A DNA stretch of 63,810 nt, counting the filler, from Reticulomyxa filosa (lineage: Eukaryota > Protista > Foraminifera): NCBI GenBank assembly GCA_000512085.1. It is 21 parts of 21 records of this genome, joined end to end, with 100 filler letters (N's around TTAATTAATTAA, not from the genome) between each part and the next. Parts side by side here need not be neighbours in the genome. Positions count along the whole stretch, not along the records: positions 36,270 to 44,674 come from ASPP01009479.1; 20 more parts are not named here. One strand, 5' to 3'. This document shows, one piece after another, positions 5,249-44,809 of the stretch. The position numbers were made by a program, and so were the translations under genes. The notes beneath the pieces were generated by a model, which saw nothing but the letters and a program-made list of their open reading frames with translations, searched no databases and was not told the origin of the DNA. Numbering within the stretch: position 1 is the first letter of the stretch; each line of letters begins with the position of its first letter.

Positions 5249-5520
5249 GTTAAAAAAAGTATTGGCATATGCATATAAACATTATAAACATTATAAACAT
5301 TATAAACATATATACATNNNNNNNNNNNNNNNNNNNNNNNNNNNNNNNNNNNNNNNNNNNNTTAATTAATTAANNNNNNNNNNNNNNNNNNNNNNNNNNN
5401 NNNNNNNNNNNNNNNNNATCTAATTTAATCAATGAAAAACATTGAATTTAATAATTATGATTATCCATTTTTTTGAAACAAAATACAAAAATGATTTCAT
5501 TCCATATTGGAAATTTTAAA

Positions 5521-7199
5521 TTATCCCCAAATATGAATATTACCTTTTCTTGAACCATAACACAAATTGAAACCACAATCACTATCCTTTTCATTTTCTT
5601 TCTTTTTCGATGATATAAATTTCAGACACAATATTGCACCATCATCTACATTAATTACATGTAATCCTTTCTTTGATCGAATATCCCAAAAACGAATTGT
5701 TTTATCATATGATCCAGAACATATTACATTTGATTCATCCTTACACTGATTTTGAAAACGATTAATATGACTTACTACAAATGGTGAATATTCAACAGCA
5801 GTCACATAATTAAGATGTCCATTAAATATTTGGATTTGTTTACCAGATCGAATATCCCACAAACGAACACTCTTATCTGATGATCCAGATAATATTATAT
5901 TTCTTAATTCATTCAATCCATATTTTATGCTATTTACTGCTGCGTTATGTCCTTCAAAATTAATTGATAACTTTTTTGTTTCAATATCCCATATTCGAAT
6001 GGTATTGTCGTATGATCCTGAACAAATAGTATATCCATTACCACCAATCATATCAATATTATTACTTTTTTTATTTTCATTCTTGTTATTGTTACTGCTT
6101 TGCAATGGTGAAATATCAACACACAAAATATCACTTATATGTCCATTGAAAATATGTAATAATCTAGATGTCGCAATATCCCAAAAACAAATTGTTTTGT
6201 CACGTGATCCAGAACACATATATCTACCATTATTAAATGATGAAAATCCAATACTCCAAACAGTATCCTTGTGTCCATTAAATACTTGGAATTGTTTTTT
6301 ATCTTTGATATCCCAAAAACAAATTGTTTTGTCATCTGACGAAGAACAAACAACATGACATCGATTATTATGATAATGATATTGTGAAAATTTTACACAA
6401 TTAACATAATTTGAATGTCCTTCAAATACATTAGTTTGTTTATTGTTATCAACATCCCATACACGAACTGTTTTATCATATGATCCAGAACAAAGATATT
6501 GACAATCACCAAATGTTGAATAATCAATACTAGTTACACGATTAATGTGTCCATTGAATGTATTAATTAATTTGGATGATGAACGAAATGAATCAAACTT
6601 AACTTCATGAGATAATATACACAAAGGAGAAAGTGGAATAATGTCTTGATTATCTGTTTGTTCTTTATTTTGATCATCCATTTTTTGAAAATATTTTTGT
6701 GAATCTTGTATTGATATCAAATTAAATTCATTGCTATGAGACAACCATTGTTTTTCTTTATCATTGAAATCTTTTTTAATAATTTCAATATTTCTTTCCA
6801 TTTGTTGAATATGCTCATCTTTCAATTGAATTTCTTGTCTCAATGTATTAATTTCATCATTTTTATTTTGTATTTGTTTCTTCAATTCATCAATTTCAGT
6901 ATCAATTACATCATTATTATTTATTATGAGTTGAAATTGCTTTAATTCATCCTTTGTTATATTGTAAAAAAAAAATAAAAAAATTTGTAATAAATCAATC
7001 AACAAATTCAAATAAAAAGTAAAACTTGATATGTATTATTTTGTTTTGAAAATCGATCAATTTGTTCATCTTTTTCTTGCAATGATTTTGTTACTTCATT
7101 ATTTTGTTCAATCATTTGCTGTTCTTTTTCAATAAATTCTCTTTTCAATAATTCAATATCTGCACGATGTTTGAGCAATTCTTGTTGGAGATTATTTTG
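5521..7199 (-). CDS. Coiled-coil + WD40-repeat protein (3' part)
   Basis: About seven GH...CSGSxDKT(I/V)RxWD repeats in ORF 5521-7011, preceded by coiled coil; upstream exon ~7035-7199 truncated by spacer. Confidence 0.92.
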
Positions 7200-36100: not shown

Positions 36101-37608
36101 GTATATACTAGCTCTAAGAACTTTTTTTTAAACACCTCTTATCCCCTCCCCCCCCCCCTGTTCCATCCTNNNNNNNNNNNNNNNNNNNNNNNNNNNNNNN
36201 NNNNNNNNNNNNNTTAATTAATTAANNNNNNNNNNNNNNNNNNNNNNNNNNNNNNNNNNNNNNNNNNNNATTGCTTCCAATTCATTGTTAAAGCATAAAA
36301 GACGCACGTCAATGTGATATCAGCTGGTTTTTTAAAAAGACTAACTTGTTGTATTCTCATTTTCTCGGTGGCCAAAGAATTTTGTACATGTGCAAAATTT
36401 TAGGAATTAGATCATGCATGTAGCCAAAGTAAATCATTTTTGGCAAATACATTTCTACATCTACCAAAATGAAAAAAATTGAACTACGTCCCCTTTTGTA
36501 ACCCCACTTGACCGATTTTTTAAAATTCGATCTGTTTTAGAGATCCAAGATTTTTTTTGAATGTTGCATACAACCAACAACTTTGAATTTCAAAGAGAAT
36601 AAAAATCGTGTCTCCAATACTGTAAAAAGGGGCTAATTTCGTTTTTTAAATTTTTTCTGTCTTTCACGTGAAGCCTGTTCTAGCAAAGCTCAAAGACTTC
36701 TTTGAGTATTTGTTAGTGAGCTAGTGTAACAAATCGCAATGATATCTGCTTTTTCCCACTCCAAACGACATAAATGCTTTAATATTTTTTAACATAAGTT
36801 TCATGTCTGAAGTTGTTACGAAATCTTTTTTCATATTCTTAGAAGTTATATTCTATAATCAAACATATTCATTGCATTACGTTTCACTACTACAACAGCT
36901 TGACACTTCCTCTCCGCTCCGTGGTTACGAGCAAGGAACAGCGGACATAATCGCAGGGATTCATATACCACGTGCGAAATTTTTTTTAATGAACAGAAAA
37001 AAATTAATGTCCATTTTCTTTGAGTTATAGTAAATCAAACTGAATCGAGAAGAATGCAAAATGCTTGCCAATTTTGAAAGGAAATAATTGAAGTCAATTG
37101 ATCACAGAAAATTGGAACATCGTGATTTATATCAAAATTATAATTTAAACAGCTGAAACTGTGGTCAGTGCCACAGCAGAATTATTTCACAATGCTCAGA
37201 AAACGCAGTATAACATAAAAATGATTACAAATTAATGTGGAGATAGGAAATACTTCCAACAAAAAGCAAAGTTTTGTTGATCATCGCATAGATTCTCAAA
37301 CAGGGATACATTTCCGTCTTACCAAGGGAAAAAGATTAAAAAAATAGGAACAAAGAAAAACAACGATAAAAAAAAAACTAATAAAGGCAGATCAATGGAT
37401 TGCCAAGCTGCAATATCTATCACATATTGAAAGAAACTCCAATAAAGTTCAAGAGAAGAGTTGATTGTATAGTCAATGTGTAGAAATAGGAGAGGGAGTT
37501 TAAATCATGGACATTCATGTTTATAGAAATGGAATCAATTCGGGCTCTAAATCTTAACTCAAAAACAAATGTTTTGGAAATCGTTCATTTTTTTTGCAAT
37601 GTTTTATT

Positions 37609-40080
37609 TCAAGTGTCTTTGTTCTCAGACTTGACATCATGTTCAGTGGCACTCTTATTCTCATTGGAATGTGTCTTTTTGATATTTTCGGAGTTGCTCT
37701 GTTGAATTGCATTGCTATTATTCCTATTGTTTGAAAGCTGGCTGCGACACTCATTATCATCGTCATACTCACTCCACAAATCTTTGACGGCATCGATCTG
37801 TCCCATGAGTACAGGTAACTGAGTCAAAGCAGTGTTATACCAGTCCCTGCCTCCGTTGTCAACAATGGACTCCTTGAAAGGCTCCAACATGGACTTCCAT
37901 TTGGTGGAGGGTATTTGAGAGCAAGTGATAATAACACATAAGGGGACGCCTAAATCCACGAGTTTGGCGCACATCGCAATTAACTTGGGCGCTTTGGCAA
38001 GCCAGTGGAAAAGAGGATACTGTGCCAAGTCTTGAGTCGATTGAGGTGGAGTCAATCCCTGGAAGTCATATTCGGTGAGTTGTCTTGTGCTGGCTCCAAT
38101 TTGGGTATATTTATGTATTATATATTATTATTATATATTATTATTATTGTTTTTTTGTTATTTTTTTTTTTTTTTTATCCAAACAAAGCAAGAAAGAAAA
38201 ACAAACCGTATTCGAAGTAATCGACAGGCATCAACATTGGAAATGGCCTTGAGTCGATACGTCCGACAATCGAGTCGATCGAAAGCTTCGATGGAAGTGG
38301 AGAGATTGGAGTGGCAAATAAGCAAAATACGAGCGCGACGTATTTCATTGGTCAAGGAGTGTAAAGTGGTGAGGAAGCGTTTCAACATGCCCTCTTTGTA
38401 TTGCAAATGGTCCAAGATGAACAAAGTGGGCCCGCGACACTTGCGTTTGATTTGAGCCAAGATGGATGCTTCGTCCATGGGTTTGAAAATGATGCGTCGC
38501 GATTGGACAGTACCAGTTTGGCGGTCATTCCAAATTTCTTTGGGGAATTCATTCAACGAGCACTTTTTGAAAAGCGTGGATACGTGAGAATAGATATCCC
38601 GTTCCAATCTCGCCTGCAAAGTTTGATCCTGATATTGGTGAGCGCGGAACAATATGTAATGATCTTGTTCGTGCACCTCATCGACAAAGTGAATGACATT
38701 GGGCGTGTCTTTGTATTGCTCACAGCAGATTTGGTCGTGAATGTCTTTGGGATAGTCCATCATGCGATGCGACTTGGGATCGCGATACTGGAACCTGCCT
38801 CGATCGATTCCAATGGCCATGCGATCGGCAATGAATCCAAACAAGCGATCGGGGTCCATGAGCGGATGCAGATCGATCCACCACACCCCTCCAGGGAAGA
38901 TTGGCGTGTACCAAGGGCGCGTGAAAAACTGAGCCACTCCATGTCCGACCGTCGTGCATCCCACATACTTGGGGCCACATAACACGACCATGTCTTGCAG
39001 GCGAAGATTGTCCGGATGCAGCAGCATTACGACATTACGAATGTCCTCCTGTCGACCGAGCACCGTCATGGGGTTCGTGCGATCGCGTACGCCTTGCGCA
39101 AAATTGGTGGGTAAGGGATGCACAATCGGTTGAATCAAGTCCTCTTCCCCTTCTTTTTCATCATCATTATCGTTATCATTATCGCTGTCATCTTTCTTCT
39201 TTTCATGCGATAACAATGGCACGTCACAAAGGATCTGTTCTTTATGATCCCCTTCTTTGCCAAGCAGCAAAAACTTCTTCGAGTGTTCGTGTGGGGCATT
39301 GGGTTGGCAGCATGCAAAAGAAGAAACGGAGGCAGAAACAGAAACGGAGGCAGAAGAAGAAGAAGAAGAAGAAGAAGTGGCTCCAGGACAGGAAGAAGAG
39401 TGATGTGTTTTACAACAACGTACCTGCTTGCAATATGGACACAAGCACTCCTCCTTATGTCCCTCATGACGACAGCAGCAATCGTCCTGACCTTGCAGCT
39501 TGAGCTGAGCCTGTGCATTTTTGAATGCCTCCAACACCATGCTCTTGTTGCCGAGCAAGTGTTCATAAAAGCTTTGTGCAAATGCGATGGCGATCTTGTC
39601 GTGGATCTGCACCAACGAGTGCACGGCGACGACGTGAGGGGACTCCGGCCTCGACAAATGCCGACGCCACTTGTTCGCTGAAGCACGTCGATACGAATAC
39701 TAACTTCAACTGCCACAAGCTATTAGTTAGAGCCGCCTTGATGGTCGCGCTTGTGACCACCTCCATTCCTCCTCGTCCATTTTCCACCTGCAACATCTGC
39801 GCGTTCGGGCCGTGTCCACTGATGTGCACAATCTGAGCGCCGCGGTGAATGCACGTCATCAACGACTGCTTCGTCAATACGCCAAAGAATACACCTAGTC
39901 GTCGTCCGGTTCGTCGGAATACGTACTCCAATTTATCGTGCTCCAATCCCAAGTCCAATGCGGCACCCTCCCCTTCCAGTGGCGCAGAGTGCAAGATCGC
40001 GACGTCGAGCTTGCGTTCGGAAAATGGAATTGGAGTCAAAGTTGGAACTGAAAATGGAGTTGCTTTTTTTTTTTCAACTG

Positions 40081-40115
<35 letters not shown>

Positions 40116-42548
40116 ATGATGATGTGCATAGAGGATAAGACACTCGTCGCTTCACTTGAATGCCTCTACTCTTCATTTCTTTTTTCGATCGGACTTGGGA
40201 TAATGCAGCTCGACTTGGCTCAACTCACTCTTGGTGTTCTTGATGTTATTGTTGTTGTTGTCGTCATCATCATCATCATCATCATCATCATCGTCATCAT
40301 CATCGTTGTCATCATCATCATCATTCTCATCGTCATTGTCATCGCAACCAGGGTTCTCACAAGTGGATTTGTCGCATGTCGTCTTTGCCTTTGCCTTACC
40401 CTTAATCTTTGTCCCAAATGCAGCGGGGTCTCCTTGCCACTCTCTACGACGGTCTTTAAGTGGAGACGATGGACTCGATATCGGCCAGGTGGTGGTCGCA
40501 GCTGCAGAGCTTTGGAAACGCGGCGGCACCGAGGACGACTTGCACGTGAGCGACGGCCCGTTGCTGAAATCCTCGGGCTGCCACTCATCGGCTTGGTCCA
40601 CGTGATTCAAATGGCGGATATCTGTCCCCTCGCCTTTCAAGCGCTGGAATACTCTTGTCTGCATTCCTGAAAATCGTGCCAGTGCTGATTGGTTGGGATA
40701 GGTGTCCATTTCTCCCTCTTCCACCTTTTCGTTTGCATGTTCTATTACACTTGCTCGTCGTTTATTATCATTATCATTGTCATTATCATTGTATTATCAT
40801 TGTCATTATCATTGTTATTGTCGCTGTTTTTTCTATCCGGCTCTTTTGGGTACAATATGGACTTTGTTTTCAATGATGGGTCCTCTTCCAACAGCTGCAA
40901 CATCACGTTCATTAATTTGTCCCTTTCGCGAGCGTCTTCCGATCTTCCCGTTCGACACAAACGCCAAATTGCTAATGACAACACTGACGAGGGTAGCGCC
41001 ATGTCCGTGCACATGCACGCGTACATTTCACTTTTTTTTTTTTTTTTTTGACGTTTAAAAACACACATTTAAATAACCAATTAAATAAATAAGCGCTTAT
41101 ATTATATATGTAATGTACATTACATGTATAGGTTTTTTTTTTTTTTTTTTTAAATTATAAACTTGAATCGCAATGAGGGATAATTTCCCATACCCATCGC
41201 GGCCAAAAATAGAGCGCAGTTATTTCTCACGGCATCGTCTCGATCTATGTATTCAAAGGGTATTTATGTGTGTGTGTGTATGCGAGGAATTTGGATTGTT
41301 ATCGCTTGGCAACAATGACAACAATACGTATACACATACGCGTGACTTTGAGGTTGTAAGCCCTTTCCACTAATCCTACCCGCGTACAGTACTCTTGCAA
41401 TGCATCTTTTTTTTTGTCAAAAAAAAAAAAAAAAAAAAAAGCAAGCTATCTTATATCCGACTGGAGTGACTCTTTTTGTGTGAAAACACGTGCCAATATA
41501 TACATGTATATAAATATACATATATATCTATATATATATATATGTATGTATATATTGTATACGTCTCCCTTTGCCAAGAGGGTACCTTTGTCGGGGGAAA
41601 CAATTTTGCCCAATAGTGAAAAGGTATTGCCAATGATACTGACAGCGCCATCGTCAATGAATCCACACTTGACCACGTTGTCTAAATGGTCTTTCTTACT
41701 CCAAAATTTGTCAAGCCATTCTTTTTTTTTTTTTTTGTGTACATACATATATATTATTTAAAAGTTGTTGATTATTTCGATGCTCGCAATATATAAAAGG
41801 ATGATAGATACTACGTTTCTCCTTATCATAGGTACATGCATACAAAGAATAGAAATCCTTCTCTCCCTCTAGTTTTTTTTTTTTTTGTTTGTTTTTTTGT
41901 GCTTGCCTTTTTTTTCTTTAAAGTCTTCTTTGGACTGGCTACACACTTGATTTAATACGACCAACCCTGCTTCCCACAGTTCATCCGACTTGTTTTCCCC
42001 CCAATTTATCACATAACACAATGTCAAAGCCAACTCTTTTTTTTTTTAAGGGAAAAAAAAAAAACAAAAAGGTAAAAAAAAAAAAAAACTTTTAGAATAT
42101 TGCAAAATGTGAATAACCACATCCAAAACATTTTTTTGAAACAGTGCTTTATGCAAGTGGTGGTTGGATGACACAAATGCCAATGTTCGTAATGCGTTTA
42201 ATTGCAAAACGTGGTCCTTTTGTCGGACAAACTTTAGTAGCCGAGGTATATGTTTACTGAAGACGGGCATTTCTTTTTTTTGTTTGTTTGAAATCACACA
42301 TCGCATTCACATGTGTACATACAAAAATAATCCCACATACTACAATATACTGTCATTACATACAATAAACAACAAAAAATCTGTCTTTTGTTTTGTTTTA
42401 TTTTATTTTTACAATGTCTAGCACAACTGTGAGTGAGATGAGAATTGTACCACATTTGAGCTACGTTAAGGTAGTGATCTGATGCGTCTAAATCCACCAT
42501 ACCATTTGCTGCTGTTAACACTTCAAATGCCTCTCCATGAGCGGACAT
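37609..42548 (-). CDS. Large ARM-like + CHAT protease + STAND/NB-ARC-like NTPase protein (multi-exon, apparent frameshifts)
   Basis: ATG 42548; ARM-like exons (LQLNALRTLAFVSSN); CHAT motifs IVHISGHG, LKLVFVSTC, AFVEAGVP/HVVA, IHDKIAIAFAQSFY; NTPase motifs VLGRQED, VVLCGPKYVGCT, FPGGVWWIDL, TLFILDH, ARILLIC, YRLKAIS..DA..LL. Frameshifts near 40790, 40180, 40070, 39640. Linkage of the ARM exons is inferred from continuous GT-AG introns. Confidence 0.8.
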
Positions 42549-43042
42549 TTTTTTTTTGGTACTTTCTTTTTTGTAATGTGTTTTTTTGTTTTGTTCGTTA
42601 AGTAGTTGTATGGCAAGCCTGACCAAGTGCACAAACACTTGTCATAACAAGGTCGAAGGAAGAAATTGCAATTCTCAGTCAACAACAGAAGAGCGATAAA
42701 AGAGCAAAAAAAAATTGGAAAAAATTGTTTGATGACGATTTGTCAATGTTTTTTTAAGGTTCCAAAAAAACTCACAGGGAGCTTTTTTTGTGATCTGTTT
42801 TTGCTCGAAAAACGATGGAAAGGAGGAGGGAGGGGGAAAAAAAGAGAAAGTGTTTCATTTCAACAATTTCAACTATGAATCATTCACTTGATTAAAGGTA
42901 GCAAAAAAAAAAAACAAATTACACTTAAGGGAGAAAATAAACAGAGGGAGAGAGAAGAGCTATTAAAAAGGAGCTCCCGGAATGGTGCTCAACAAAATAG
43001 TAACAACAAAAACAATGATAAAAAAAAACAATGGAAACGAAA

Positions 43043-44600
43043 CTAGCGAATAAAAATTCTTCTATGACAATCTTCGGAAACACGAAATCCAAAATATTGA
43101 AAAACCTCTTTGAAATTTTTGAAGGAGTGTCCATTGCAAAGAATACTTATGTAAGGGCTAAAAGGAGTGCGTCCATTCCAAGCGTTTCCGGGCGCAGTTC
43201 CAAATACTTTACGGTCCATAACGACAGCAAAGCCTTTGAGTTTCATTTCCACCTTAATCAAATAGCACAGATGCACAAGAGCGTGAAACACTTGGCAAAA
43301 TTCGGATAGGCTGGAAAAGTGATAATTTGTAGGTCCAAAGGGATTGACACTGGCTTTGGCCTTGATGCAGAGTATAAGTCTGTTAATCAAAGACCAAGCA
43401 GGAGCAGTTGAAGTAGTAGAGTGTGTGATAGTGAAGGGCGATTGCAATGACAGCGGCGATGTGCAATGCTTGCTGCACCGGCTCAAAGCATTGGACAAGC
43501 CATTGAGCAAAGGGACGAGCAGCTGAGGATCATCGACGACCAGCTTGAGTGTATTGATGCCAATGAGCGGCTTGGGAGGACGCATTGTGTAATTGGCACT
43601 GTCATTCCATTCGAGCAGCTGCAATAGTTTGGTGAATGTTCTACTCTCGTTCCTCTGTTTCGTAATGACCCACTCCACCGCGTGCAGCATGTAGCGAGGC
43701 GTCGGTTTTATACGAAGGGAAGAGGAGGAGGAGGAGGAGGAGGAGGAGGAAGAGGAGGAGGAAGAGGAGGAGGAGAGAGGTGCTATTGATATTGATGATG
43801 GTAATTCTAATGCAGCTGCTCCTGTGTCTACTAATAATGATGATGATGATGATAAAAAGGAAGGATAAGAAGAAGGATTAGAATCAAAAAGAATACTAAC
43901 ATTCGAACAAGAAGAACATGCACAATAAAAAGGGTGTGTGCAAGTGCAAGTGCAAGCACATCGCGACAAAACATCGCGCAAAAACAGACAATTGGAAGCG
44001 ATGACTTTGGCTTTGATAGATTTGAGATGGGGCAGCTGCGGACGAGCGAGCAAAGGATTCAACTTGCCTGTGCATCCCTGAAATTTCAATCGTTTGCACT
44101 CGCGCGCGATAAAGAATGAAATTAGCATCGCCGCCGTAAAGTCCATGTCAATGGCTCTACTCTCATATCGCTCCCTTTGTGATTCTGCTTCATAACTGAT
44201 GTCCACATTGGTGATCTTGACGTCACTCATACGTCGCTTCAGTGTGTCCATTACAAAAGAGGCCATGTCTGTAATCGCGTTGCTGCCGACGGGACATTGC
44301 ACGTTCATTTGCGAATACTGCGAGCAAATGCTGTCCATTTGCGAACACCAAAACATGGAGTGATCAAACTTCAATACCCGCAGCTGCGGGAACTTGCTTT
44401 CGTAAGGCGGACTCCCACTCCGAAACCAACTGCAAATGTCCACCTTGCAGCGCTCCAGTCGCAACTCTTGCAGCGTCGGAATGTCCCCTGCAAGCAGTTG
44501 AATGCAGTCCTTTTTATCTAGGTTCAATAGACGTAAGCTTTTCAATTTGTTATGAGATAAAAATTTCAGTGAAATGTTTATATTTGCATGCATCTCCGAC
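43043..44600 (-). CDS. Leucine-rich-repeat (F-box/LRR-like) protein, large last exon
   Basis: LKSLRLLNL, LQELRLERC, FPQLRVLKF, LPHLKSIK motifs; poly-Ser insert; 516-codon ORF. Confidence 0.6.
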
Positions 44601-44809
44601 TCTTTTATTATTATTTATTATTTATTATTTATTATTTATTATTACATGTTTTTTTTTGTTTTTTTTTTTTTTTTNNNNNNNNNNNNNNNNNNNNNNNNNN
44701 NNNNNNNNNNNNNNNNNNTTAATTAATTAANNNNNNNNNNNNNNNNNNNNNNNNNNNNNNNNNNNNNNNNNNNNTTTTTTTTTTTTTTTTTTTAAATTTT
44801 ATATGTCCG

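Follow-up and report, generated by a model that had tools for sequence, protein, structure and literature searches.

A foraminiferal protein family joining a CHAT protease domain to a STAND/AAA+-like module that lacks canonical nucleotide-handling residues

Background

Innate immunity and cell death share one logic across animals, plants, fungi, and bacteria, the fusion of an effector to a STAND domain, and the question raised by the locus described here is whether a foraminiferan follows the same logic, with a caspase-type protease placed under an ATP-driven switch. The locus lies in a stretch of 63,810 nucleotides of Reticulomyxa filosa DNA (hereafter the window: the whole stretch analysed, 21 parts of assembly GCA_000512085.1 joined by filler), of which positions 36270-44674 are the reverse complement of contig ASPP01009479.1 (8405 bp). 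The gene occupies positions 37609..42548 on the minus strand, the strand of every window feature reported below, running from an ATG at 42548-42546 to a stop codon at 37611-37609 through approximately nine to ten exons. An original prediction, made from the sequence alone, read it as a CHAT protease domain set directly upstream of an NB-ARC-like module, and proposed an apoptosome-like proteolytic switch in a lineage where no characterised system of this kind was known. The motifs on which that reading leaned (HISGHG, VFVSTC, GRxxD, FPGGVWWIDL, LFILDH, RILLIC, and the helical exon) are all present where it had placed them on the minus strand, and a literature search agreed with it about the lineage, recovering no paper on a CHAT-STAND family in Foraminifera or Rhizaria.

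The present analysis upholds the fusion and departs from the prediction on how the protein would work. The gene belongs to a family known so far from foraminifera only and encodes, in order, ARM/HEAT-like repeats, a linker, a CHAT protease domain, a Cys/His-rich connector, a STAND/AAA+ module with an insert, a helical lid, and a tail; we consider it probable that the STAND/AAA+ module serves as a scaffold that does not hydrolyse nucleotide.

Results

Fusion of CHAT and the module in one chain

The CHAT domain and the downstream module are physically fused. In the window, a single open reading frame (ORF) at 39657-38158 holds the C-terminal helices of CHAT, the Cys/His-rich stretch, and the entire module, a continuity for which splicing is not required. 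The closest R. filosa paralogue, L006 (RFI_01212), which is 76-79% identical to the window in nucleotide sequence, is annotated as a fused protein, and CHAT stands directly upstream of the module in all long members of the 15-protein set returned by the profile search described below. In the full-length orthologues a single chain runs from the ARM-like region through linker, CHAT, Cys/His connector, and module to the helical tail; these orthologues are P0016 (1307 residues, the lone gene filling a transcript-like 4086-bp contig of a JGI dataset), P0019 from the MMETSP1384 transcriptome of Ammonia sp., and P0017 and P0024 from the EukProt entry for Nonionella stella, to which a fragment from Bolivina argentea can be added. 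The original prediction had named CHAT and NTPase parts on separate transcripts as an outcome that would count against it; at the level of the family the opposite was found, in that proteins sourced from transcriptomes are fused.

Public annotation of a second paralogous locus, L001 (ASPP01018417.1), calls the CHAT part and the module as separate neighbouring genes, and the window could by the same token be read as two adjacent genes mistaken for one. We give this reading next to no credence and reject it because CHAT and module sit in the same ORF, in which CHAT profile positions 227-271 are followed by the complete module; RFI_01212 and at least five full-length foraminiferal proteins are likewise fused.

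The CHAT protease domain

The CHAT domain, a clan CD protease domain of caspase fold, lies at 39508..40054, with its catalytic His in HISGHG (39826-39809) and its catalytic Cys in VFVSTC (39700-39683), the order that is correct for a CHAT dyad. Pfam CHAT (PF12770) matched the window in two pieces, one of 17.1 bits (profile positions 129-225) and one of 14.9 bits (227-271), each falling below the 24-bit gathering cut-off and each scored apart from the other, not on read-through sequence. The two pieces abut collinearly on the profile, and only a one-base frameshift separates them. The intact CHAT ORF of L001 reached 34.6 bits and the orthologues P0003, P0004, and P0006 reached 28-30 bits against the same cut-off, and the HxSGHG and FVSTC motifs, which hold the His and Cys columns of the dyad, are conserved in all aligned family members. 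The Pfam scan of the window returned no Peptidase_C50 match. The CHAT call, with both of the catalytic motifs that had been predicted, thus holds because the split Pfam pieces are collinear, the relatives exceed the threshold, and no member has lost the dyad; judged from its sequence, the protease looks intact at its dyad.

Fold and affinity of the module

The module that follows (38207..39141) continues the open frame of the CHAT C-terminus. Its landmarks are LGRQED (39060-39043), a P-loop without lysine, GPKYVGCTT (38976-38950), the family signature RPWYTPIFPGGVWW (38919-38878, with FPGGVWWIDL at 38898-38869), a beta-rich insert of ~110 residues (~38800-38470) modelled between beta2 and the Walker B strand, the Walker B strand LFILDH (38424-38407), the beta4 strand RILLIC (38331-38314), and the helix YRLKAISNVDACRLL (38259-38215); a GxP-like LGVPLCVI (37953-37930) follows in the helical lid, on the last exon.

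Profile methods do not name this module. Against Pfam and NCBIfam, the window module gave no NB-ARC, NACHT, or other NTPase match, and PADLOC gave no match. Across the family, Pfam returned weak P-loop NTPase matches only, to AAA_16 (three members, best E 1e-4), AAA_22, AAA_25, NTPase_1, KAP, and nSTAND3; the best STAND profile, AAA_16, reached 23.2 bits where the cut-off is 32.6, and nSTAND3 had E 0.046, neither being significant. Searches of PDB sequences with a single sequence and with two profiles found nothing significant, the best match being RFC1 at E 0.3, an alignment that is itself not significant and in which Walker A, Walker B, and beta4 are collinear. The Pfam part of the profile check proposed with the original prediction thus recovered CHAT in the relatives and left STAND below threshold throughout the family.

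An AlphaFold2 model of the orthologue P0016 (residues 880-1307, built from the 25-row alignment A3) reached a predicted local distance difference test score (pLDDT) of 91.3 and a predicted template modelling score (pTM) of 0.86; the window module itself, run in AlphaFold with a 4-row alignment, reached a pLDDT of 33 and was unusable. With the P0016 model as query, Foldseek placed ORC5 at rank 1, with Cdc6, the archaeal ATPase SSO1545, Apaf-1, CED-4, and a wheat NLR also among its matches, at E ~1e-4. VIA-align gave Z scores of 13-15.6 over 210-250 residues to Cdc6/Orc1, TnsC, MuB, NRC4, ZAR1, CED-4, Apaf-1, and Dark, which are effectively tied. The ten nearest shapes in the ESM Atlas were all bacterial STAND proteins (of NB-ARC, AAA_22, HTH_77, or TPR type), and an embedding search with the window module itself reached AAA_16, NACHT, NB-ARC, and nSTAND clusters, the best of which scored 0.97; the ten best hits all fell in one clan. 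On the strength of the orthologue model, the module is predicted to have the fold of a STAND/AAA+-type nucleotide-binding domain followed by a helical lid. Of the earlier description of the module as NB-ARC-like, a STAND/AAA+-type fold is supported, by the model of an orthologue; the PDB fold matches do not separate STAND from Cdc6/ORC, and there is no NB-ARC or NACHT profile match. The beta-rich insert (P0016 ~980-1090) is confidently modelled and falls outside all of the structural matches.

Within this fold, two ancestries can be weighed. The module might derive from the initiator branch of AAA+ that contains Cdc6/ORC, TnsC, and MuB, in which case its likeness to NLRs and Apaf-1 would be general kinship within the clade. 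The top VIA-align rows do go to archaeal Cdc6/Orc1 (Z 15.6 and 14.7), TnsC, and MuB, as does the first Foldseek rank to ORC5, and the position of the large insert, between beta2 and the Walker B strand, is that of the initiator-specific motif of AAA+ initiators. However, NRC4, ZAR1, CED-4, Apaf-1, and Dark follow within 2 Z units and at higher sequence identity (14-17% for NLR, CED-4, Apaf-1, and Dark, against 9-13%), the nearest Atlas shapes and the ten nearest embedding clusters are all STAND families, and the weak Pfam matches go to AAA_16, nSTAND3, and KAP. The module moreover has an hhGRxxD/E motif ahead of its P-loop and a GxP-like proline in its lid, and fusion to a protease effector is typical of STAND. 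An initiator origin is accordingly unlikely in our estimation, and STAND descent is the more likely of the two.

Nucleotide-handling residues

In the P0016 model, beta1 (40-45), the loop (46-50), and alpha1 (51-63) form a classic P-loop in which Cys51 occupies the Walker A lysine site; across the alignment this column holds Leu in eight members, Cys in five, Thr in five, and Ile in one, and Lys in none, and the window, with GPKYVGCTT, has Cys. The Walker B Asp is present in 20 of 20 members and is followed by His in 18, Gln in one, and Asp in one, so that the window reads LFILDH in place of hhhhD[DE]. No sensor-1 Arg is conserved after beta4, where the window reads RILLICHSN and the family columns vary as H/S/R/N and D/S/E/N. 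The model also contains no winged helix with an MHD-like His, its tail (325-427) being built of helices throughout and without a beta-hairpin. The original prediction had listed a P-loop and called the module an NTPase; the P-loop of the window has Cys in place of Lys, and the name NTPase is not supported, given a Walker A lysine missing from all of ~19 members, the Asp-His of Walker B, and the missing sensor-1 Arg and winged helix. In every member seen, the canonical machinery of ATP hydrolysis is missing, and an ATP-driven apoptosome-like switch is not supported by these sequences. A switch by nucleotide hydrolysis or exchange, as in Apaf-1, is unlikely because the lysine, the second Walker B acid, the sensor-1 Arg, and the winged helix are all missing.

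Other parts of the pocket have been kept. Both P-loop glycines and the [TS][TS] pair are conserved (G-x4-G-x-[TS]-[TS]), and in the lid motif [VM]-P-[LF] the Pro is present in 13 of 13 members with a variable Gly, an equivalence to GxP that is drawn from alignment and model position only. A Lys or Arg is frequent at position 3 or 4 of the P-loop (GRPKxG, GPKYVG). Together with the invariant Walker B Asp, these features could be taken to mean that the module is still a working NTPase or nucleotide switch, in which a relocated basic residue replaces the lysine of a deviant apoptosome-like device. We judge this improbable: the basic residue, found in most members, shifts position and is absent from L001 (GLPFVG), the second Walker B residue is His, the sensor-1 Arg is not conserved, the canonical lysine column varies freely among L, C, T, and I, and no NTPase profile reaches threshold. 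Binding of an anion or a nucleotide may nevertheless persist in a pocket of this sequence.

Distribution and selection

An exhaustive profile search of 1.84 billion representative proteins found 15 relatives only. Those that are named all belong to Foraminifera, in four foraminiferal species, and the family appears from these searches to be so far restricted to that group; R. filosa itself has at least four loci of the CHAT-module family. An origin in bacteria or in a contaminant was considered and rejected, given the GT..AG introns, the eukaryotic neighbours on related contigs, and the relatives in four foraminiferal species. One such neighbourhood is the metagenome scaffold L003, which carries P0003 and on which fragmented genes for a clathrin-adaptor mu subunit and for UMP1 adjoin the family member; this contig is eukaryotic and probably foraminiferal.

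In comparison with L006, the ratio of nonsynonymous to synonymous substitution rates (dN/dS) was 0.04 for the N-terminal part of CHAT (138 codons), 0.11 for its C-terminal part with the Cys-rich stretch (94 codons), 0.066 for the module (364 codons), and 0.10 for the last exon (167 codons), with off-frame controls above 1. On codon comparison, the domains are thus conserved under purifying selection. A conserved cellular role would fit the family better than a fast-evolving immune receptor, because paralogue dN/dS is low and motifs such as RPWYxPxFPGGVW are near-invariant across foraminifera.

Frame breaks in the window copy

Set against the continuous L006 ORF 401-2155, which runs from the last ARM-like block through the linker into CHAT, the window shows four one-base frame changes in tblastn. 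Three fall in the linker, at ~40793-40787 in a GAT/AAT/GAC microsatellite, at ~40180 in an A6 run, and at ~40125-40070 in an (AGC)n / A11 run; the fourth, at ~39640-39643, is a one-base insertion in a CCCC run within CHAT. The extra base in CHAT lies in the run GTCCCCTCAC, and L006 and L001 are uninterrupted there (FVEAGVPHVVAVH and FVEVGVPNVVAVH).

One explanation is that the family is otherwise functional but the window copy has recently decayed into a pseudogene, the frame changes being real slippage mutations. There are four such changes, one of them inside CHAT between the catalytic Cys and the C-terminal helices, redundancy in a multi-copy family would allow a copy to be lost, and dN/dS is blind to recent decay at the synonymous divergence that separates the window from L006 (dS ~1.5-2). 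On the other side, the only in-frame stops are those made by the shifts, neither the 1.45-kb module exon nor the last exon is broken, and dN/dS is 0.04-0.11 on either side of the CHAT break. All of the breaks fall in homopolymer or microsatellite sequence, and breaks of the same type elsewhere in L001 and L006 suggest a systematic assembly problem. L006 shifts frame in a poly-Ser tract (~1950-2155), and L001 does so at a T-run in the module and at the CHAT-connector junction (~6350-6360 and ~5293-5469). In all three draft contigs the breaks occur in low-complexity sequence only, which suggests an error of assembly. We therefore lean towards assembly errors of the draft and away from inactivation as the source of the frame breaks, with the reservation that real slippage would look like an assembly error and that the two cannot be told apart; a pseudogene is possible, if not the account we would choose. 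Of the combination named in advance as telling against the original prediction, confirmed frameshifts with no expression, the frameshifts are seen in the assembly.

Gene structure and the remaining domains

In alignment, the full-length orthologues P0019 and P0016 begin and end at positions matching 42548 and 37609, the ends of the gene, and the conserved coding blocks from 42527 to 37753 are collinear with the paralogue locus L001. Coding blocks have 45-55% G+C, as against ~32% in the AT-rich, homopolymer-laden introns and spacers. Searches were run per exon or per piece, and the limits of the small N-terminal exons are approximate. Exon 1 (MSAHGEAFEVLTAANGMVDLDASDHYLNVAQMWY..., 42428..42548) matches residues 1-34 of P0019 and positions 2515-2616 of L001 and is followed by a GT donor at 42427-42426. 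The last intron (38090..38206) is 117 nucleotides long, AT-rich, bounded by GT..AG, and in phase 2; its junction, ...LLRIR/TRQLTEYDF, agrees with orthologues that are uninterrupted there, and both L001 and L006 have an intron at the same place. The last exon (37609..38089) encodes the helical lid, which resembles helical domain 1 (HD1), and after it a hairpin of two helices that ends in ...VKDLWSEY; a low-complexity tail then leads to the stop codon. This exon aligns to the C-termini of all full-length relatives in alignment A3.

The ARM/HEAT-like region (40835..42272) is spread over small exons, with coding blocks at ~42272-42090, 41982-41935, 41706-41590, 41421-41338, 41245-41162, and 41035-40835 that are collinear with L001, P0016, P0017, and P0019. 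Pfam matches to the N-terminal exons of the window were weak (Adaptin_N, Proteasom_PSMB, Arm), as were those to the N-terminal regions of the orthologues (ARM_ARMC5 at E 5e-6 to 4e-5, ARM_PUB, HEAT_2, Arm); residues 114-213 of P0016 match Pfam DUF7377 at 27.9 bits against a threshold of 27. At the other end of the protein, the full-length orthologues terminate in ..KKIWN ~120 residues past beta5, with no C-terminal LRR, WD40, TPR, or ANK repeats, and the last exon of the window has no Pfam match. The architecture expected at the outset, with ARM-like exons N-terminal and no repeat sensor C-terminal, is thus borne out both by these weak ARM/HEAT matches and by where the orthologues end.

Between the ARM-like region and CHAT lies a poorly conserved, low-complexity linker (40055..40834), rich in Asn/Asp, Asp, and Ser, which was compared with the L006 ORF by tblastn and holds three of the frame changes. 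Between CHAT and the module, the Cys/His-rich connector (39283..39486; DDCCCRHEGHKEECLCPYCKQVRCCKTHHSSSC ... poly-Ser ... CCQPNAPHEH) follows a pattern kept in all full-length members, DCCC[RK]HxGHx3CxCx2Cx4CCx2HH...C...CCxPx2PHxH, with ~15 Cys and His residues in fixed arrangement. It matches no Pfam family and is possibly a new Zn-binding module.

The NCBI annotation splits the gene into a model of 127 residues (42306-41869) and one of 897 residues (41068-38158), leaves out exon 1 (42548-42428) as well as the last exon (38089-37609), and seems to use short introns to get past the frame breaks. Upstream on the same strand, an intact ORF of 516 residues (43043-44593), identical on ASPP01009479.1 and annotated by NCBI as a hypothetical protein, has poly-Ser tracts and no Pfam or NCBIfam match. 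Its ESM-Atlas model is of low confidence, with a pLDDT of 0.47, and the nearest shapes are of leucine-rich repeat (LRR) or F-box-LRR type at template modelling (TM) scores of 0.31-0.42. This LRR-like ORF was considered as a sensor partner and rejected, as it is not kept beside the paralogues and is probably an unrelated neighbour.

Discussion

How a protein of this kind would act can be sketched as follows. It would be a large cytosolic protein in which the linker after the ARM/HEAT-like repeats is disordered. The STAND-like part, having lost NTP hydrolysis, would serve as a scaffold that possibly still binds a ligand, and this scaffold would control the protease by induced proximity, through self-association or the docking of a partner. 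The ARM-like region may bind the trigger or the substrate, and the Cys/His connector may couple the two halves.

Several observations weigh against the reading of the module as a non-hydrolysing STAND scaffold. The structural model is that of an orthologue ~30% identical to the window and not of the window protein, and fold scores against the PDB do not split STAND from the clade of Cdc6/ORC, TnsC, and MuB. The conserved P-loop glycines and [TS][TS] pair, Walker B Asp, and lid Pro suggest that the pocket is still used, and the word dead may go too far for it. With four frame changes in ~1.2 kb, the window copy could be a pseudogene, and dS relative to L006 is near saturation, which leaves recent decay invisible in dN/dS.

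A bolder version of the scaffold reading, which we offer as speculation and would ourselves bet against, is a nucleotide-independent apoptosome in cis, in which CHAT is fused to a STAND scaffold whose hydrolysis was lost before the split of monothalamids and rotaliids and which is switched by assembly through the ARM-like and Cys/His parts. Were it true, the family could serve regulated cell death or the control of self and non-self in giant, syncytial, fusing cells, and, as a rhizarian counterpart of the NLR-CHAT systems of fungi, would add a Zn-binding connector and an insert domain that are both new.

Whatever its mechanism, foraminifera possess a conserved, expressed, multi-copy protein that joins a CHAT protease to a STAND-like domain, and, with its NTPase residues systematically missing, the family is a natural setting in which to test whether control of a caspase-type protease by a STAND scaffold is possible in the absence of an ATP cycle. 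It also brings to notice two conserved parts without a known family, the Cys/His-rich connector and the beta-rich insert, and corrects to one gene what public annotation had split into models of 127 and 897 residues. The practical value is limited, as the window copy may be broken.

Known systems resemble the foraminiferal family in part. Some plant NLRs have degenerate or dispensable P-loops, in which the STAND fold perhaps works without ATP hydrolysis; these are individual diverged members of otherwise canonical families, whereas in the foraminiferal family the residues were lost in an ancestor of all members across Foraminifera. By raw structural score (Z 14.3-15.6) the best matches are Cdc6/Orc1, ORC subunits, TnsC, and MuB, and Cdc6/ORC, TnsC, and MuB carry an insert in the same topological region. 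All of these, however, are DNA-loading ATPases that possess arginine fingers and a winged helix, have no protease fusion, and are less identical to the module in sequence than the NLRs are. Separase and TPR-CHAT (Csx29) have a helical-repeat N-terminus followed by a clan CD protease that is regulated by partner binding, and they differ from the foraminiferal family in that they are not known to have a STAND/AAA+ module. The similarity between the CHAT and separase folds has itself been noted (PMC12881547).

The resemblance to apoptosomes lies in the fold of nucleotide-binding domain plus lid, which the module shares with Apaf-1, CED-4, and Dark (VIA-align Z 13.3-13.9 over 218-251 residues), and in the link to a protease of caspase fold. 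An apoptosome recruits its caspase, a protein of its own, through CARD, activation is by nucleotide exchange, and Apaf-1 has a winged-helix domain (WHD), a second helical domain (HD2), and WD40 repeats; in the foraminiferal family, by contrast, protease and module are joined in cis, residues for handling nucleotide are missing, and the model has no WHD.

The closest parallels in architecture are found in fungi, where NLR/STAND sensors with N-terminal CHAT or S8 protease effectors control gasdermins (PMC12881547), and in bacterial conflict systems, where caspase-like peptidases occur with STAND NTPases (PMC10907252). No gasdermin-like neighbour was found at the three R. filosa loci read. Like the fungal and bacterial CHAT-STAND proteins, the foraminiferal family places a clan CD CHAT domain directly N-terminal to a STAND-type domain in one polypeptide and forms multi-copy families. 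The fungal and bacterial proteins keep canonical Walker A and B motifs and a C-terminal WD40, TPR, or ANK sensor, whereas the foraminiferal family is without both, and it has in addition N-terminal ARM-like repeats, the Cys/His connector, and the insert of ~110 residues. CHAT-STAND fusions are thus already known from fungi and bacteria, and what is new here is the foraminiferal version that lacks the NTPase residues.

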